Shown here piece after piece: positions 12,981 through 56,636 of a stretch of 64,000 bases of DNA. A model generated the notes under the pieces. The model saw only the letters and a list, made by a program, of their open reading frames with translations, did no database searches and was not told where the DNA came from. The position numbers were made by a program, and so were the translations under genes. Within the stretch, counting starts at the first letter, position 1. The number at the start of each line of letters is the position of its first letter. Source of the DNA: Octopus bimaculoides (lineage: Eukaryota); NCBI RefSeq assembly GCF_001194135.2, contig NC_068991.1:643982-707981 (forward strand). The letters are read 5' to 3'.

Positions 12981-14749
12981 CTTTTAAGGGAAATGGATGT
13001 AAGAGAAAAAAAACAAAAAACAATAAGCTACCGGATGTGGATTTGACTCTGAGAAAAGTAATAGATCCTTCCCCCAAATAAGGTCCAGCTGATCAGTTAT
13101 TCTTCCGAACATCCTTCGAGAATTTTCAGCTTTTTTCTGTTCTTTTTTTTCTGAGTACTTTGCTATATTTTTTTATAAAGTCAATACAATCATACCCCGC
13201 GACACACATACATTCACATACATCCATGCATATTGGTTATTTCGTTCCGTTTCACAAGGAGAAAAAAATCGCTTGCAACAATTCATGAAAAATGGGACGA
13301 GAAAAGAAATTTGATGAATTCGCATATTTTCATATCAGCAGCGCTCAGATGCTCTTGATAAGTTAGACAAAAACTAAAAACTAGGTGGACCACGTCGAGT
13401 TATTATCTGGTCTGTTTTATGAAGACTCGGAAACTATACCCTACTACAAGAATGTGATGGGAGCTGGCAGATAAACGGATAAGATTAAGCATATTCCTAA
13501 ACTTCCACTTCTCCTTGCTAACGAAAAAGATACCGTAATATATTCAAGTTCTCGATTTCTATCTCAGAGACGCATCACATTTCTTAGAACAAAGTATTTC
13601 CTGACCTTAGTAAATAAATATGCTTTCCATTAACCACTGTGACTAATCATCTTATAGAAACAGCTTAAAACTGAGTTTAATTAATTTAATGAAACAACTG
13701 AGGCAAACTGCACGTACAATTTTGCATTTATCAGGTGGATTACTCTATTCTTTTGTTGAGTACAAATTTATCATTCTTCAAGAATATTATCGACAATCAC
13801 TTCGAAGTTTCTGTCAGTGAAGCCATCTTTGGATGGCTTAACTGTTCGAAACTTTGAACTCATTGTCAATATATTGGATTAAGAATAGTATGTGTGTATA
13901 TACATACATATACATACATACATACACACACACATACATACACATACATACATGCATACATACATACATACATACATACGTATAGGAGTAAATGTAAGCA
14001 AGTCAATATACAAAAAATATTAAATGCATTTAATACAAAAAATGCGTATAAAAATGTCCGACTTACACAGAATAGCAATAATATCAGACGTACATACAAA
14101 CACAGACGTACAACAATCCATGAGCTAGCTATATTCTAAATACCATTTCCTCACGCTATCAATAAACGAATAACTTTTTTCTCTTCCCGTCGCCATCACC
14201 TCCGCCTTCTGATCGAGTGGATGAGATGATGACGGGGTGGTGGGTTAGGGCTATTCTTCATATTTAGGGTCACGATAGAATAAACATTGGCCATATGTAT
14301 CTTACACATACACACACACACATATACTCACATATATTTATATCTATATACACAAACGTCTATATGCATACATATATACACACAAACGCATATTGTATTC
14401 TCTAAAATGTGAGCACCATGTTGCAGGAAAGCTGGGAGAGGCATCGAGAGCAACAAGATGTAGGAATGGGGAAGTGTGTGGGAAATAGGGAAAGAAGGAA
14501 ATTGGGAAGATCACAGCAGGAATAGCAGCAACAAAAAGCAACAACAACAACAACAGCAACAACAACGACAACAAAGAAAAGAGCAACAGCAATCATAACA
14601 ATAAAAGATATAACTAAAGATTAAAAGAAAGAAAATAGGAAGAAAAGTTTTTGAAAAGGAACTAGATTCCAACCTCCATATGTATGTATCTATGTATGTA
14701 TGCATGTATGTATAGATAACTATATACAAATATATACTCACACACACAC

Positions 14750-14821
<72 letters not shown>

Positions 14822-15142
14822 NNNNNNNNNNNNNNNNNNNNNNNNNNNNNNNNNNNNNNNNNNNNNNNNNNNNNNNNNNNNNNNNNNNNNNNNNNNNNNN
14901 NNNNNNNNNNNNNNNNNNNNNNNNNNNNNNNNNNNNNNNNNNNNNNNNNNNNNNNNNNNNNNNNNNNNNNNNNNNNNNNNNNNNNNNNNNNNNNNNNNNN
15001 NNNNNNNNNNNNNNNNNNNNNNNNNNNNNNNNNNNNNNNNNNNNNNNNNNNNNNNNNNNNNNNNNNNNNNNNNNNNNNNNNNNNNNNNNNNNNNNNNNNN
15101 NNNNNNNNNNNNNNNNNNNNNNNNNNNNNNNNNNNNNNNNNN

Positions 15143-15189
<47 letters not shown>

Positions 15190-15192
<3 letters not shown>

Positions 15193-15390
15193 CTTCCAGT
15201 GTATATAGGTCCCAACCCTGTCTTGTCTGTGAATATATTCCTTCTTAGCCAGGACTGGGCAGCCAGAGACAATATGGTTTATTGTTTCTTGTCCATATCT
15301 ACATATTTTGTAGTTACTTGTTATGCTTCTTTTCATTATATGTTTCTGGTAATTTCTGGTGGGGAGCCTTAAGTAGCCCTCAATAAGTAA
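15190..15390 (-). mobile_element. R4/Dong-type LINE fragment (CCHC region)
   Basis: Reads CRYGQETINHIVSGCPVLAKKEYIHRQDRVGTYIHWKL; truncated by (TA)n and a gap. Confidence 0.75.
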
Positions 15391-17434: not shown

Positions 17435-17845
17435 CGTAAAACACTTGCTCTATATCATCACTTCTGATATCGGAATCTCTCTTACTACTGCGACTGCTCG
17501 CCGACCCTCTTCGATCTGATTCTGAAGCCAGGGATGTTCTCCGACTGTAATAACTGCTAGCTGAACCCCTGCGGTCTGTATCTGATGCTAAAGATGTCCG
17601 CCGACTACAAAAGCTGCTGCCTGAACCCCGCCGATCACTTTCGGAAGCAAACGAAGTTCGTCGGCTGCTGTTGCTGCTTAGTGAGATCCGTCGATCAGCC
17701 TCGGAAGTGTACGAAGTTCTCCGACTGCCATAGTCGACGAAAATCTGAGGAACAACGAACGGTGCCTGTACTTTTGAGCTCCGACAGATTGCTGGAGCTG
17801 TTACCAATTGCATTTTGTCTTCTTTTTTCTCCTTGTGGCATATTG
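17435..17845 (-). CDS. Ser/Arg-rich coding exon with four 20-aa tandem repeats
   Basis: Acceptor tattttattttctgctattttgcag|, donor TACG|GTAAGT. 411 nt, phase 1-1; covers most of ORF 17367..17813. The 60-nt repeats differ largely at synonymous positions while the RRxS pattern is kept. Confidence 0.85.
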
Positions 17846-17934
17846 CTGCAAAATAGCAGAAAATAAAATAATCGACTTTTAAGAAACTTTATAAACGATT
17901 TTCAAGAACAATAGCACAAACAACAACAACAACA

Positions 17935-17994
<60 letters not shown>

Positions 17995-18699
17995 NNNNNN
18001 NNNNNNNNNNNNNNNNNNNNNNNNNNNNNNNNNNNNNNNNNNNNNNNNNNNNNNNNNNNNNNNNNNNNNNNNNNNNNNNNNNNNNNNNNNNNNNNNNNNN
18101 NNNNNNNNNNNNNNNNNNNNNNNNNNNNNNNNNNNNNNNNNNNNNNNNNNNNNNNNNNNNNNNNNNNNNNNNNNNNNNNNNNNNNNNNNNNNNNNNNNNN
18201 NNNNNNNNNNNNNNNNNNNNNNNNNNNNNNNNNNNNNNNNNNNNNNNNNNNNNNNNNNNNNNNNNNNNNNNNNNNNNNNNNNNNNNNNNNNNNNNNNNNN
18301 NNNNNNNNNNNNNNNNNNNNNNNNNNNNNNNNNNNNNNNNNNNNNNNNNNNNNNNNNNNNNNNNNNNNNNNNNNNNNNNNNNNNNNNNNNNNNNNNNNNN
18401 NNNNNNNNNNNNNNNNNNNNNNNNNNNNNNNNNNNNNNNNNNNNNNNNNNNNNNNNNNNNNNNNNNNNNNNNNNNNNNNNNNNNNNNNNNNNNNNNNNNN
18501 NNNNNNNNNNNNNNNNNNNNNNNNNNNNNNNNAAAACATAGATCGTCCCTGGGCCGACAACGCAAACCTCTTCAATGAAAGAGTTGATGGAAAGTGTAAA
18601 TTTCTGTCGCGAATCCGAGGGAAGTTAGACGCGATCTGAATTCAAAACATTGTCTTCTGCAACAGAAGGGTCTCAGTCGCTAATTATATCTCATAATAA

Positions 18700-20394: not shown

Positions 20395-21089
20395 AGGTGT
20401 AGTACTTGCACAGACTGGACTGATCCTTAAGTCGAAATTAAATGGACGGAATAAGATCCTTAGACATGGAGCAAGGGTAATCGCATGGCCAGTAGACGAA
20501 CTAAACATCTTAGACAGAAAGACAAGGAAGTTGCTAGCTAGATATGGGATACTCCACCCAAAAAGTGAAACAGACAGACTGTATGTACCAAAAAAAAAGA
20601 GGGGGAAGAGGACTGATTGGATGCGAACACAGCATTAGAGCAGAAGAAAACAACATAGCATGGTATGTAGAAAATGCCACAGAACCGCTGTTACTAGAAG
20701 TAAGAAGGTCAGGCTTGCGTTGGATAAAAGATTGCAAAGATAAAGCACTGTACAAGAAATTGAAAACGAATGAAACTGAAAATAGGTGGGTAAAGAAAAG
20801 AATGCATGGTCAGTTTCATTGGGATGTTGAAGATAAGACAGACAGAGAAAAAAGATGGCTATGGATGACTAAAAGTGATTTAAAACCGGAAACGGAGGCT
20901 CTAATCTGTGCTGCCCAAGAGCTAGCACTAAGAACAAACTACATAAAATGCAGGATAGACAACGCATCAGAAAGTGATGAGTGCAGAATCTGTGGACAAA
21001 ACGGTGAAACCGTATGGCATATTACCAGCCAAAGTACGCCACTAGCCCAGAAGGAATATAAGAGACGCCACGACAATAAAGCCAGGCTT
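20395..21089 (+). mobile_element. R4/Dong-type LINE fragment (post-RT to CCHC)
   Basis: RLYVPKKKGGRGL motif (shifted frame), then HGQFHW, LKPETEALICAAQELALRTNY and CRICGQNGETVWHI...EYKRRHD; runs into a gap. Confidence 0.8.
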
Positions 21090-43086: not shown

Positions 43087-43239
43087 CGTGAATTTTTCTG
43101 ATGAGTTTTTTAATGTTGTTATCCCAAAAGCCTCTTGTCCGACAGTAGGAACATTTCCAGCAGACAAAGGCCATTGCTACAATACTACACAGTAGCAAGA
43201 AGGTGCCAACAACAATGCCGGCAACTGTAGGCATGCTCA
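43087..43239 (-). CDS. Transmembrane-helix exon of an uncharacterised single-pass membrane protein
   Basis: Acceptor tattccgtttatatttttcag| and donor CACG|GTAAGT. 153 nt, phase 1-1, open: SMPTVAGIVVGTFLLLCSIVAMAFVCWKCSYCRTRGFWDNNIKKLIRKIH. About 23 hydrophobic residues are followed by a Cys cluster and basic residues. ATG at 43234 has A at -3 and could be the start. Confidence 0.75.
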
Positions 43240-50849: not shown

Positions 50850-52890
50850 AAGTTACTCCACTTATTCAATGAAATTATGAGAGGTCCTACCTAAACACTT
50901 GACTTGTTAGCAACAGGTATTACTTATCTATTACCGAAGAATAATGAAACTAAATATCCCCAAAACTATCGGCCCATAACATGTCTATCTACAACATATA
51001 AACTTTTATCATCCATCCGCGTAGAGAAAACATAGAAATTTATGAAACAGAACGATATTTTCGCCACTGAACAAAAAGGGTGCCGACGACCATCGATGGA
51101 TGCAGAGACCAACTCTTAATCAGTCGCAGGGTCGTTGAGAACTGTCATAACAAACGCAAAAATCTCAGTTCCGCCTGGATATCTTCAAAATTTCTCCTGT
51201 GATTTCGAAATTCCTGAAGTACAACATGTCAATGTGGAATACAAATCTCCAACTATACCACTCGAATGGAGTATTGACCACACAAAAAAATATTAATATC
51301 AACTGCGGCATTTTCCAAGGTGACTCATTTTCACCTTAAATTTTTTGCATAGTCCTATTTAACATAACAGGGTATGAATATCAAATTGGCGACCAGAAAA
51401 TAAGTTATCTATTTTATATGGATGACTTAAAACTCTATGGCAAAGGTGGTAATGAGCTTGAAGGACGGACTACGTACTGTGAAAGCATTTTAGTGATGAC
51501 ATCGGGATGGAAGTTGGTCTTGATAAATGTGCCAAGGCCACTCTCCAGAAAGGGAAACTGAAGACCTCAGATTCAGTTATGTTGGATGTTGACACAGTCA
51601 TAAGAGAACTCAAGCAGGAACAAACTTACAAATACCTCGGAATAAATGAGAAGTCTGGCATTCAACATGCAAGTATGAAAGAGAAAATCAGGGTGGAATG
51701 TTACAGGAGAGTTCGAGCAGTCCTAAAATCCGAGGTGAATGCACGTGACAAGGTGTTAGCCATAAATTCCTTAGCAGTTCCAGTTGTTATTTATAGTTTC
51801 AGTATTTTGAACTGGAATATGAGCGAAATAAGGAAGATTGTCAGGAAAATCTGTAAGCTGCTGACTTGCAATAAGATGCACCACCCAAAGGCAGACAGAT
51901 CGTCTTTACCTACCCGGAGCTCAAGGAGATCGACGCTTGTTCCAGTTTGAAATATCTTACAAAACCACCGCAAACTGGACTGACAAAATATCTTGAAGCA
52001 TCTAACGACTGAAAACCACAGAAGACGTAAGAAACTTCATTCTGTTATGAAGAAGAGCAAAACTTTTCAAGTGAGTTTATGCATAATACCCAGGTTGAAC
52101 AGCATGATGGAAGTACAGCAACTGTAGTTGCAAAGAATGTGAAATTAATAGCAAAGCAAAATGTGTTTCAGCAATTGGATGATAGGTGGGAACAAAAACC
52201 CCTGCATGGCAAAGAAGCTGATGTAGGCCAGAAGCACACCCATCATTGGCTACGGAGCTCAGGGCTAAAGGCAGATAGTGAAGGCTTTATCTTGGCTGCT
52301 CAAGAACATATTGACCCAGAACTATCAAGCCAATGTGATGAAAAATGGTGTAGAACCAAAGTGCCAATACTGCAACGATAAGATAGAAACAGTGGACCAC
52401 CTAATCTCTGGATATAAGGTTTTAGCACCTGTAGGATACAAATCAAAACGTACAGTGTTGGCCAATATCTACATTGAATAATGCGTCGGCATTGTAGAAT
52501 CAAAACTGCTGACAAATGGTACCAGCACCACCCTGAGGTTGTAACTGAGGGAGAAAATGTAACGATTCTTTGGGACTTTCCAGTATATACAGACTGGACC
52601 ATCAAAGATAATAAACCAGATATTGTTGAGAAAGACCAAAACAATAAAGTCTGTTTATTGATTGACATGAGGATACCTTGTGACCATCATAATATTATGG
52701 CAAAAGAATTTAACAAGCTCAGAAAATATAAAGATTTGCTGATTGAAATGGAAAAGACATGGCACCTCAAGATGGTTATAATAGCAGTGATTGGAGGAGC
52801 ACTTGGAATGATCAAAGAAGGAACTGAAATTATTTAAGAATGATTGTCTTAACTGGTAACCGGTCACACGTACCGAGAAAAGCATTGTCA
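50850..52890 (+). mobile_element. R4/Dong-type LINE, about 2 kb with RT and RLE remnants (dead)
   Basis: NYRPITCLSTTYKL, GIFQGDSFSP, LFYMDDLKLYG, GLDKC and TYKYLG RT motifs; then C..C...ETVDHLISG, KPDIV and IAVIGGALG; many stops and frameshifts. Confidence 0.9.
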
Positions 52891-55744: not shown

Positions 55745-56636
55745 TAAACAGTTCCACAACCATAGGACGAATTTGATCAGATAAAATGCTTAAATTGTTT
55801 TCACTATTAATTCTGCCATGAAGGGAAACCATTGGGCCGGTAGATTTCCAAGATATAGCCCATCCCCAAGATCATCACATATCCCCCTCCATGTTTAACA
55901 GTTGGAAGGAGGCAGTCTGGGTCAAATGCTTCTTTTGGCTATCTCCACACGTATACTCGGCCGGTGGTCAGAAATAAGGTAAAGGGTGACTCGTCTGAGG
56001 AAATATCATTCTTCCATTGCTCTAGGGACCAATTCTGTAGGTTTTTACTCCACTCTAAACTCTTTGCAACGTTTATTTTTGAAAGTAGGGCTGATTGCAG
56101 CCTTCTCGTGAAAGCCGGCTTTGTGCAGCTCTCGGCGAACAGTTTTTGTGGAAACTGGATTCTCGGGGTGTTCAGTAAGCTCTGCATTAATTTTGGGAGC
56201 TGTACTTTTGTGATCCTTTCTAACAATTCGCGTAAGAGTCCGACGCTCCCTATTTGAACGTTTTGGTTTTCTTCCGGAGTTTTATTTCGACGATGAAGTT
56301 TTTCCTGTTTCTCAAAGGTTGTCATTACTTTCGAGACAGTACTTCTTAATACACCAAACATTTCGGCTGTTTTCGTTACGCTAGCGCCTGCCATACGAGC
56401 ACCAACAATTACACCTCTTTGAAAGTCCGATAGATCTGTCATTTCAATGAATTTTAATTACCTTTTCCTGATGATATCTGAAAAGAAACAGCAATTTTAG
56501 CAAAACATACTAAGCAACACTGATAATGATTAAATAAAAAAAACATAAAAATGAACAAGCTTTTGACGGTTTTATAGATATTTCAAAATTATGATACTAT
56601 GATGCTAGATGTTTCCATTATTTTGTCCAACCCCTG
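55745..56636 (-). mobile_element. Tc1-family DNA transposon, 3'-truncated
   Basis: TA|CAGGGGTTGGACAAAATAATGGAAAC TIR at 56636. Transposase reads MTDLSDFQRGVIVGARMAGAS..., a shifted-frame segment GRKPK...TVRRELHKAGF, then WKNDISSDESPFTLF and PTVKHGGG. The second and third catalytic residues are missing. Confidence 0.9.

Follow-up and report, generated by a model that had tools for sequence, protein, structure and literature searches.

Two questions are raised by a stretch of 64,000 nucleotides (nt) of the Octopus bimaculoides genome (assembly GCF_001194135.2, contig NC_068991.1, positions 643,982 to 707,981; referred to here, at its full length, as the window): to which protein does an exon belong that encodes the motif Arg-Arg-x-Ser (RRxS) again and again at even distances, and what might such an array of basic residues and serines do there? 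A preliminary description of the window had presented the array as a “phospho-ruler” of eight RRxS sites preceded by a motif of the PxIxIT type, and had proposed a switch moved in opposite directions by cyclic AMP (cAMP) and Ca2+, or a 14-3-3 binding array, contained in a single skippable exon. The exon is, by homology, the main linker exon of the octopus orthologue of the Lottia gene Syt21, which belongs to an invertebrate-only group of synaptotagmins, and its array comprises nine sites, the number and order of which, to judge from the orthologous sequences, were set before cephalopods, gastropods and bivalves diverged and have not changed since. The reading favored here, to which we assign a probability of about 60%, is that a synaptotagmin insensitive to Ca2+ carries in its linker a charge switch that cAMP drives at multiple sites, as suggested by the protein sequences and by analogy with known systems.

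The exon itself is bounded by an acceptor AG (17847-17846), which follows a pyrimidine tract, and by a donor GT (17434-17433) in the context G/GTAAGT. The minus-strand translation of positions 17843-17437 reads ...APFVVPQIFVDYG, followed by GSRRTSYTSEADRRISLSSN / SSRRTSFASESDRRGSGSSF / CSRRTSLASDTDRRGSASSY / YSRRTSLASESDRRGSASSR and then by SSKRDSDIRSDDIEQVF, and the product as a whole is made up of (A)ICHKEKKEDKMQLVTAPAICRSSKVQAPFVVPQIFVDYG, the four 20-residue units and SSKRDSDIRSDDIEQVFY; the PQIFVD motif and the 60-nt units were both recovered at the coordinates first given for them (Table 1). The last base of the exon, a G (17435), forms an Asp codon with the next exon, and the UniProt protein A0A0L8FKI2 (P0038, UniRef100_A0A0L8FKI2, “C2 domain-containing protein”, Octopus bimaculoides), to residues 1-126 of which the exon is 100% identical, runs on at this point as ...QVFY-DYSDSD. 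Given the presence of an in-frame stop 15 codons upstream of the acceptor, the octopus linker exon has no upstream coding extension. A Pfam search of the linker exon and its partial homologues returned no domain, apart from a sub-threshold MLANA match on the transmembrane region.

In O. bimaculoides, the seven intervals that separate the eight RRxS sites are all of 10 residues, just as first described, and a ninth dibasic site, KRDS, continues in the same register. The eight sites are carried by four 60-nt copies at 60-nt spacing, which a repeat search of the window found to be 62-72% identical in nucleotide sequence; Tandem Repeats Finder, run with a minimum score of 30, did not report this 60-nt repeat, because the identity between the units, here put at 57-68%, is too low. 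When the exon peptide was shuffled 100,000 times with its composition preserved, the mean number of RRxS motifs was 0.68 and the maximum was five, as compared with the eight observed. Within the array, sites of type A (xSRRTS-hydrophobic-AS[DE]) alternate with sites of type B (xDRRGSxSSx), and its 90 residues, which are without hydrophobic character, include 37 S/T, 20 K/R and 10 D/E.

The codons of these units are especially informative about their history. Between the four units, the proportion of differing synonymous sites (pS) is 0.57-0.99, i.e., saturated, versus a proportion of differing nonsynonymous sites (pN) of 0.11-0.29, and five different codons are used for the arginines and four different TCN codons for the acceptor serines, which bears out the earlier observation that the units hold on to Arg and Ser while their codons differ. 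In a comparison of six lineages (positions 17472-17729 of the window, minus strand, together with the contigs L009, L006, L001, L004 and L008), the acceptor serine of the nine sites is encoded by TCN, with the third positions free, in 53 of 54 cases, as against about 70% AGY in the other serines of the array (Fisher p from 1e-4 to 1e-2 per lineage), and the acceptor positions have thus apparently been occupied by serine, without a break, since the units arose. There is, in addition, no sign of concerted evolution, given that orthologous sites share ~7.5 identities out of 10, a little more than the ~7.0 shared by paralogous sites of the same type. As regards the adenosine-to-inosine RNA editing of coleoids, an AGY serine can be turned into glycine and a TCN serine is not recodable; an adaptation to editing was ruled out as the origin of the acceptor TCN codons, since snails and bivalves show the same pattern, which points to an old constraint rather than to editing.

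Conservation of RRxS in orthologues had been set beforehand as a test of the array, and the array passed it: in all of the mollusc orthologues examined, the count is eight RRxS sites plus one [RK][RK]xS site and the order is unchanged, the ninth site being RK[GSN]S in the other molluscs. In an alignment of 19 homologous sequences (A1), none of the Arg-Arg and acceptor Ser columns that make up the eight sites shows any variation, and all nine sites are invariant in at least 15 mollusc orthologues. The residues P, I, V, D, Y and G of PQIFVDYG are also invariant in the 19 sequences, and F, V and V are nearly so. In a contig from a second cephalopod (L009, Logan run ERR12921338), the nucleotide similarity to the window starts at the acceptor and stops at the donor, and 72.7 of the 93.3 synonymous sites of the exon differ (pS 0.78, saturated), versus a nonsynonymous divergence (dN) of 0.051, which is the comparison with another cephalopod that had been called for. 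Given this low dN, the invariance of the alignment and the restriction of the conservation to the exon, the exon is real coding sequence, translated and under strong purifying selection at the level of the protein.

These results also bear on the simplest of the other explanations, in which the stretch would be non-coding, or a low-complexity open reading frame (ORF) recently expanded from a microsatellite, that looks like an array by chance. The window is indeed rich in microsatellites, with a (CA)28 tract and an assembly gap just upstream of the exon, and Pfam finds no domain in the exon itself. An origin of this kind is nevertheless hardly credible, and we regard it as refuted by the invariant columns of the alignment, the similarity that is limited to the exon, the conserved sites and the low dN (0.05, against saturated synonymous sites), given also that the same nine sites are found in cephalopods, gastropods and bivalves, that the units diverged long ago (pS of up to 0.99), and that the exon is joined to C2 domains in UniProt and RefSeq gene models.

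On the other hand, the exact spacing of the sites is not conserved. The successive RRxS intervals are of 10, 11, 10, 10, 10, 10 and 10 residues in the second cephalopod and of 21, 10, 10, 10, 10, 10 and 11 residues in gastropods, and range over 9-15 residues in scallops and bivalve-type sequences, so that the exact 10-residue steps are specific to O. bimaculoides, and the term “phospho-ruler” overstates the case for a spacing that varies from 9 to 21 between species. The gastropod interval of 21 residues is due to a hydrophobic insert of 11 residues, SDH[VM]MLGALAL, between sites 1 and 2, which is carried by P0057 (residues ~104-119), P0026, P0059, P0003 and P0014 and is modelled by AlphaFold, with low confidence, as a short helix. 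Ten residues is the modal and ancestral interval because the unit has 20 residues with two sites, and the period is a legacy of this ancient duplication unit, not a strictly maintained ruler. In a divergent homologue (P0045, from a Logan contig), FVVPQIFI-H is kept and a different unit, DRRGSxSS(R)SSRKSSDGG, is present in four to five copies, which speaks for a constraint on the density of the sites rather than on their geometry; the sequence of this unit suggests an independent re-expansion of basophilic sites in another lineage. The linker has two further conserved sites of the basophilic type, [YK]RRSxSLAE and RRxTLSxLVxxS, in downstream exons that are not part of the window (columns ~285-345 of alignment A2), after which the pre-C2A motif IGLPDxP..LNLEE..PRxAP is conserved.

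The identity of the gene was established through the relatives of the exon. Of 1.84 billion cluster representatives, searched exhaustively with HMMER, only 29 matched, and the named proteins in this set are all molluscan, with none from a vertebrate. The word-indexed homology search returned genomic ORF fragments and mollusc gene models only, and the pre-C2A exon of Candidula, used as a query, returned four fragments only; as the word-indexed protein search missed the 100%-identical P0038, which the exhaustive HMMER search found, indexed negatives need to be taken with caution. P0033 and the members of its cluster are scallop RefSeq proteins named synaptotagmin-7-like or synaptotagmin-11-like, P0057 is the Biomphalaria protein XP_055878635, and P0059 is a Bradybaena protein. 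The complete architecture, i.e., a transmembrane helix, a Cys cluster, the linker with the array, C2A and C2B, is found in P0057, P0059 and the scallop proteins. Two C2 stretches are recognised by Pfam in the orthologues P0033 and P0035 (expectation values, E, of 8e-34 and 2.7e-31), the octopus model P0038 includes C2B and the start of C2A, and the best match among solved structures is the C2AB of Syt1 (2r83), over residues 341-610, with an E of 1.1e-33. The features by which a synaptotagmin is recognised, namely a single N-terminal transmembrane helix, a Cys cluster with basic residues and tandem C2A-C2B domains, are thus present, the C2 domains being those of the orthologues. Within the family, the octopus protein is 78% identical to Lottia Syt21 over C2B (BLASTP, E 6e-96), and the two share the pre-C2A motif IGLPDxP...LNLxE..PRYAPP. 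In the manual synaptotagmin collection of Craxton (2010; PMC2823689), the orthologue from Lottia gigantea appears under Syt21 with the remark “N-term unidentified”, and Syt21 is reported as one of the groups absent from vertebrates and as “so far completely uncharacterised”.

The C2 domains of this protein have lost most of the aspartates that bind Ca2+ in Syt1. In the alignment to Syt1, D172 is kept in C2A and the remaining ligands are changed (D178N, D230S, D232H and D238H), in C2B, D365 is kept and the changes are D303S, D309N, D363H and D371K, and the octopus C2B follows the same pattern, with T/N/H/D/R at the five ligand positions. Ca2+ sensing of the type of Syt1/2/3/5/6/7/9/10 goes with five aspartates per C2 domain, and with only one of the five in each domain the protein is predicted to be insensitive to Ca2+, which is probably the case. 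An identity as Syt7, in which the linker is alternatively spliced, was considered and dropped, given that the Lottia orthologue is Syt21 and that the Ca2+ ligands are gone, and an RS-domain (Arg-Ser) splicing factor was rejected, there being no RS dipeptide runs and the context being that of a membrane protein.

A further part of the gene lies within the window. The lead came from the Biomphalaria model, in which a transmembrane helix precedes the homologous linker exon (AlphaFold places a helix at residues 7-33 of that protein), and tblastn with the N-termini of Biomphalaria (E 3.5e-11), Littorina (2.5e-12) and scallop (1.8e-8) located an exon of the same gene ~25 kb upstream of the octopus linker exon. 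It encodes a very short N-terminus, MPTV, and a hydrophobic helix of 23 residues with a Kyte-Doolittle maximum of 2.71 over 19 residues, and the Cys cluster and basic residues that come next match, in sequence, the juxtamembrane feature of synaptotagmins that is a putative palmitoylation region. The phase-1 donor of this upstream exon and the phase-1 acceptor of the linker exon at 17845 together give the codon GCA. The upstream exon is absent from the public model A0A0L8FKI2, which is incomplete, since it starts at the internal Met at 17813 and lacks both the transmembrane exon and most of C2A. The octopus gene model is corrected here by the missing transmembrane exon, which also supplies the N-terminus missing from the molluscan Syt21 entry of Craxton (2010). 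The next downstream exon (DYSDSD...) is outside the window, beyond coordinate 1; tblastn with mollusc queries, and with the C2AB of Syt1 and Syt7 that served only as leads, gave no match to a C2 exon or to a linker exon further downstream, either in the window or in the other loci compared. In relatives, the introns reach 49 kb.

Table 1. Coordinates, in the window, of the two exons of the Syt21-type gene and of the elements that they encode.
Feature	Position	Strand	Basis
Upstream exon, MPTVAGIVVGTFLLLCSIVAMAFVCWKCSYCRTRGFWDNNIKKLIRKIH, probable start codon at 43234-43232	43087..43239	minus	tblastn, AG/GT flanks, phase fit
Transmembrane helix of the upstream exon	43157-43225	minus	Hydrophobicity and homology to the orthologue transmembrane helix
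Cys cluster CWKCSYC, then basic stretch RTRGFWDNNIKKLIRK	43142-43162 (cluster)	minus	Translation
Linker exon of the Syt21-type synaptotagmin gene	17435..17845	minus	411 nt, phase 1 at both ends, canonical splice sites
Internal Met (MQLV), start of the incomplete UniProt model A0A0L8FKI2	17802..17813	minus	Alignment to the model
FVVPQIFVDYG, hydrophobic motif with the PxIxIT-like core PQIFVD (17733-17750)	17727..17759	minus	Invariant or near-invariant in 19 sequences
Four 60-nt (20-residue) units with eight RRxS sites	17490..17729	minus	Arg-Arg and acceptor Ser columns invariant (alignment A1)
Ninth dibasic site KRDS, continuing the 10-residue register	17472..17483	minus	[RK][RK]xS in every orthologue examined
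Acidic exon tail DSDIRSDDIEQVFY	17436..17477	minus	Translation and comparison with P0038

The preliminary description had also regarded the exon as skippable. In-frame skipping is possible, given a length of 411 nt and phase 1 at both ends; however, the five scallop RefSeq isoforms (P0033, P0048, P0050, P0052 and P0053) all retain the array, and none of these five is without the linker exon, their differences being confined to the N-terminus. The first exons of these isoforms either encode a transmembrane helix or lack one, the TM-less (transmembrane-less) N-terminus being that of the RefSeq isoforms X2 and X3. The bivalve-type homologues have, directly upstream of the array exon and uninterrupted from it, a conserved ORF with the first residues MG[DE]x[VI]S[KR], a myristoylation-like N-terminus (L001 3001-3660 and L008 7588-8253; P0005, P0009, P0012, P0013, P0015, P0016, P0048 and P0050), and in its sequence this ORF looks like the product of an alternative promoter that would give a non-transmembrane isoform.

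With regard to function, RRxS fits the consensus of PKA and PKG, position +1 is hydrophobic (Y, F or L) at five of the eight sites, and there is one KRxS site besides, so that the sites can be described, on sequence, as being of the PKA type, as they had been from the outset. The array is flanked by the membrane anchor on one side and by the two C2 domains on the other, and comes after a juxtamembrane segment of the positive-inside type; the positive-inside rule, together with the topology of all synaptotagmins taken as an analogy, assigns it to the cytoplasm. The computed net charge of the array is +10 when unphosphorylated and about -8 with nine phosphates, and the serines at +3 of the type A sites fit the patterns of CK2 (SxxD/E) and of primed CK1.

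The mechanism that we propose is that the ~90-residue array would be an intrinsically disordered multisite substrate of a basophilic AGC kinase, most likely PKA, with PKG in second place. Full phosphorylation would take the net charge from ~+10 to ~-8 and would act as a graded or thresholded electrostatic switch, which may alter the behavior of the linker on an acidic membrane surface, its contacts with the C2 domains, or the binding of a phospho-reader, with the +3 serines (SxxD/E) as secondary CK1 or CK2 sites. The outcome would be a synaptotagmin whose trafficking function is tuned to cAMP.

The same residues might, in principle, work without any phosphorylation, if the invariant Arg pairs served to bind a partner or acidic lipids and the serines kept the linker flexible and soluble. 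Binding of acidic lipids is known for the linkers of synaptotagmins and for the polybasic patches of their C2 domains, the unphosphorylated array would bring a net charge of +10 beside the membrane anchor, and invariance is by itself no proof of phosphorylation. A purely electrostatic role would, however, allow K/R swaps and shifted serines, neither of which is seen at sites 1-8; the R-R-x-S register, with Ser at +3 from the first Arg, is fixed at nine sites in at least 15 species while x and the flanks vary, the codon class of the acceptor serine is frozen, unlike that of the neighboring serines, and R-R-x-S is the textbook consensus of PKA and PKG. An array that acts only through its fixed charges is, on these grounds, improbable.

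The topology of the protein bears on yet another explanation of the RR pairs, which, being repeated in a membrane protein, could be dibasic sites for proprotein convertases or Arg-based signals of retention in the endoplasmic reticulum rather than kinase sites. Signals of the latter kind are, in some cases, hidden when they are phosphorylated or bound by 14-3-3. The basic RTRGFWDNNIKKLIRK after the transmembrane helix and the cytosolic C2 domains, however, put the array in the cytosol, beyond the reach of luminal convertases, and Arg-based retention needs a pattern of the RxR type, which none of the sites has; both variants are, for this reason, very unlikely.

Several points weigh against the charge switch or against the partners that have been proposed for it. 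The predicted local distance difference test (pLDDT) score is ~25 across the array and PQIFVD, in an AlphaFold2 model that is weak as a whole (mean pLDDT 41, from an alignment of 12 sequences) and which is, given this, a weak argument for disorder. The kinase is named from its consensus, and CaMK-type or other basophilic kinases could also make use of the R at -3. The invariance of Arg and Ser could reflect a role other than phosphorylation, such as the binding of lipids or of a partner by a fixed pattern, and the junction of the transmembrane exon with the array exon is inferred, in the octopus, from the reading phase and the orthologue models. As for the partners, there is no L.[ILV]P (LxVP) motif in the part of the protein encoded in the window, FVVP having F for L, and the 14-3-3 mode I pattern R[SFYW]xSxP has no match in the array, none of the sites having Pro at +2.

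The 14-3-3 array of the preliminary description is not supported, in its canonical form, given this last result, and a non-canonical RxxpS mode of 14-3-3 binding is conceivable at most. More speculatively, the invariant motif FVVP[QR]I[FY][VI], which is beta-strand-like in sequence and immediately precedes the array, might serve for the docking of a partner, for which calcineurin, named from the outset, is one candidate. The loose PxIxIT expression of Wigington et al., P[^PG][FILV][^PG][FILV][^PG], fits PQIFVD and nothing else in the product of the transmembrane and linker exons, which is the part of the claim that stands; this expression is, however, non-specific, with 21,791 non-validated matches among human proteins and a chance expectation of ~0.7 per 300 residues, and it is not accompanied by an LxVP motif, on which the dephosphorylation of most calcineurin substrates depends. 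The calcineurin site of TRESK, PQIVID, differs from PQIFVD by conservative swaps at positions 4 and 5 only. Docking of calcineurin at this motif, which would provide a Ca2+-dependent resetting of the array, is accordingly put forward only as a tentative suggestion, with the odds against it.

The fuller version of this idea, in which PKA loads the nine sites, calcineurin docked on PQIFVD strips the phosphates when Ca2+ rises, and 14-3-3 may read the resulting state, has to be called doubtful. Besides the fit to the loose expression and the closeness to the validated TRESK site, it can draw on the family pattern P[QR]I[FY][VI][DH], in which variation is confined to the even, solvent-facing positions 2, 4 and 6, the divergent P0045 included, as would be expected of a beta-strand docking motif with buried odd positions. 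The frequency of the loose motif, by chance and among the non-validated human matches, tells against it, as do the D or H, and not T, at position 6, and the F that replaces the L of L.[ILV]P. In its favor, FVVPQIFVD is similar to LDVPDIIIT, the composite LxVPxIxIT motif of CLMB, a membrane-anchored protein that recruits calcineurin. The motif stands directly upstream of a cluster of phospho-acceptors, as in NFAT and TRESK, and the regulation of TRESK also involves PKA and 14-3-3; here, however, the first RRTS site begins only 4 residues past the motif, and Pro at +2, as needed for canonical 14-3-3 binding, is missing from all of the sites. At its furthest extension, which we regard as a long shot, a Ca2+-insensitive synaptotagmin anchored on vesicles would receive its cAMP/PKA input through the array and be reset by calcineurin through FVVPQIFVD, and would turn the history of second messengers into a graded change in release or trafficking, as a dedicated, mollusc-wide effector of PKA-dependent presynaptic facilitation of the Aplysia type, with the nine sites giving a thresholded, counting-like response.

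The charge switch can be set beside several known systems. Vertebrate Syt12 is Ca2+-independent, PKA phosphorylates it at Ser97 in the linker and nowhere outside the linker, and the S97A change abolishes its effect on spontaneous release (PMC2063632); Maximov et al. (PMC2063632) found no homology between the linkers of the fly and vertebrate Syt12. The present protein resembles Syt12 in having an N-terminal transmembrane helix, a linker with a PKA-type site between this helix and C2A, and two C2 domains without Ca2+ binding (here predicted), and differs from it in having nine invariant dibasic sites in a periodic array, in place of one functional site of the K-x-S type. Given that the Lottia orthologue is placed in Syt21 and not in Syt12 (Craxton), this resemblance is one of function and implies no membership. 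Syt21 (Craxton 2010, PMC2823689) is the same group, and the transmembrane helix and the array are not described there, since the Lottia entry is without its N-terminus.

Outside the synaptotagmins, TRESK (K2P18.1), likewise a membrane protein, has PQI-x-[IV]-D followed by a regulatory serine cluster in a disordered stretch on the cytoplasmic side; it belongs to an unrelated family, has few sites and no periodic array, and its binding of calcineurin is demonstrated, whereas the motif is known here from sequence. Calcimembrin (C16orf74, CLMB; PMC12612047) has a short, disordered and membrane-anchored segment with x-x-V-P-x-I-x-[IV]-x (LDVPDIIIT, as against FVVPQIFVD) beside phospho-acceptors. 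In the octopus motif, F takes the place of the L of LxVP and D that of T, and there is no PPpT enhancer; the anchor is a transmembrane helix here and, in calcimembrin, lipidation alone. The R domain of CFTR is disordered and has about nine dibasic PKA sites, the cumulative phosphorylation of which makes a graded switch; its sites differ from those of the octopus in being irregularly spaced, not derived from repeats, and set in another protein context. A search of the available literature found no description of the present array. What is known is the regulation of a synaptotagmin linker by PKA, and what is new is a nine-site, deeply conserved, repeat-derived array in an invertebrate-only synaptotagmin.

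As for the surroundings of the exon, (AAC)6 and (CA)28 microsatellites (17919-17994) and a 538-nt assembly gap (17995-18532) lie 75-150 nt upstream of the linker-exon acceptor, and any branch-point or regulatory sequence further upstream is, because of the gap, not readable in the assembly. ORFs that look like transposon remnants are found at 55942-56442 (minus strand), 20544-21089 (plus), 51507-52837 (plus) and 14662-15336 (minus), i.e., in the 25-kb intron, upstream of the transmembrane exon or downstream of the array exon. A Pfam search of these ORFs gave nothing significant, with one weak, sub-threshold HTH_23 match that is like a transposase N-terminus, and the others resemble, by eye, the tails of retrotransposon ORF2, without a Pfam match.

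Finally, presynaptic plasticity that depends on cAMP and PKA has its classic system in the molluscs, first and foremost in Aplysia, and the targets of PKA on the release machinery are only partly known. Cephalopods, gastropods and bivalves have a synaptotagmin in which nine sites of the PKA type are among the most constrained residues of the protein. With nine sites, the single-site principle of Syt12 might here take on a graded or switch-like form, and the array offers a concrete target for phosphorylation studies in molluscs.

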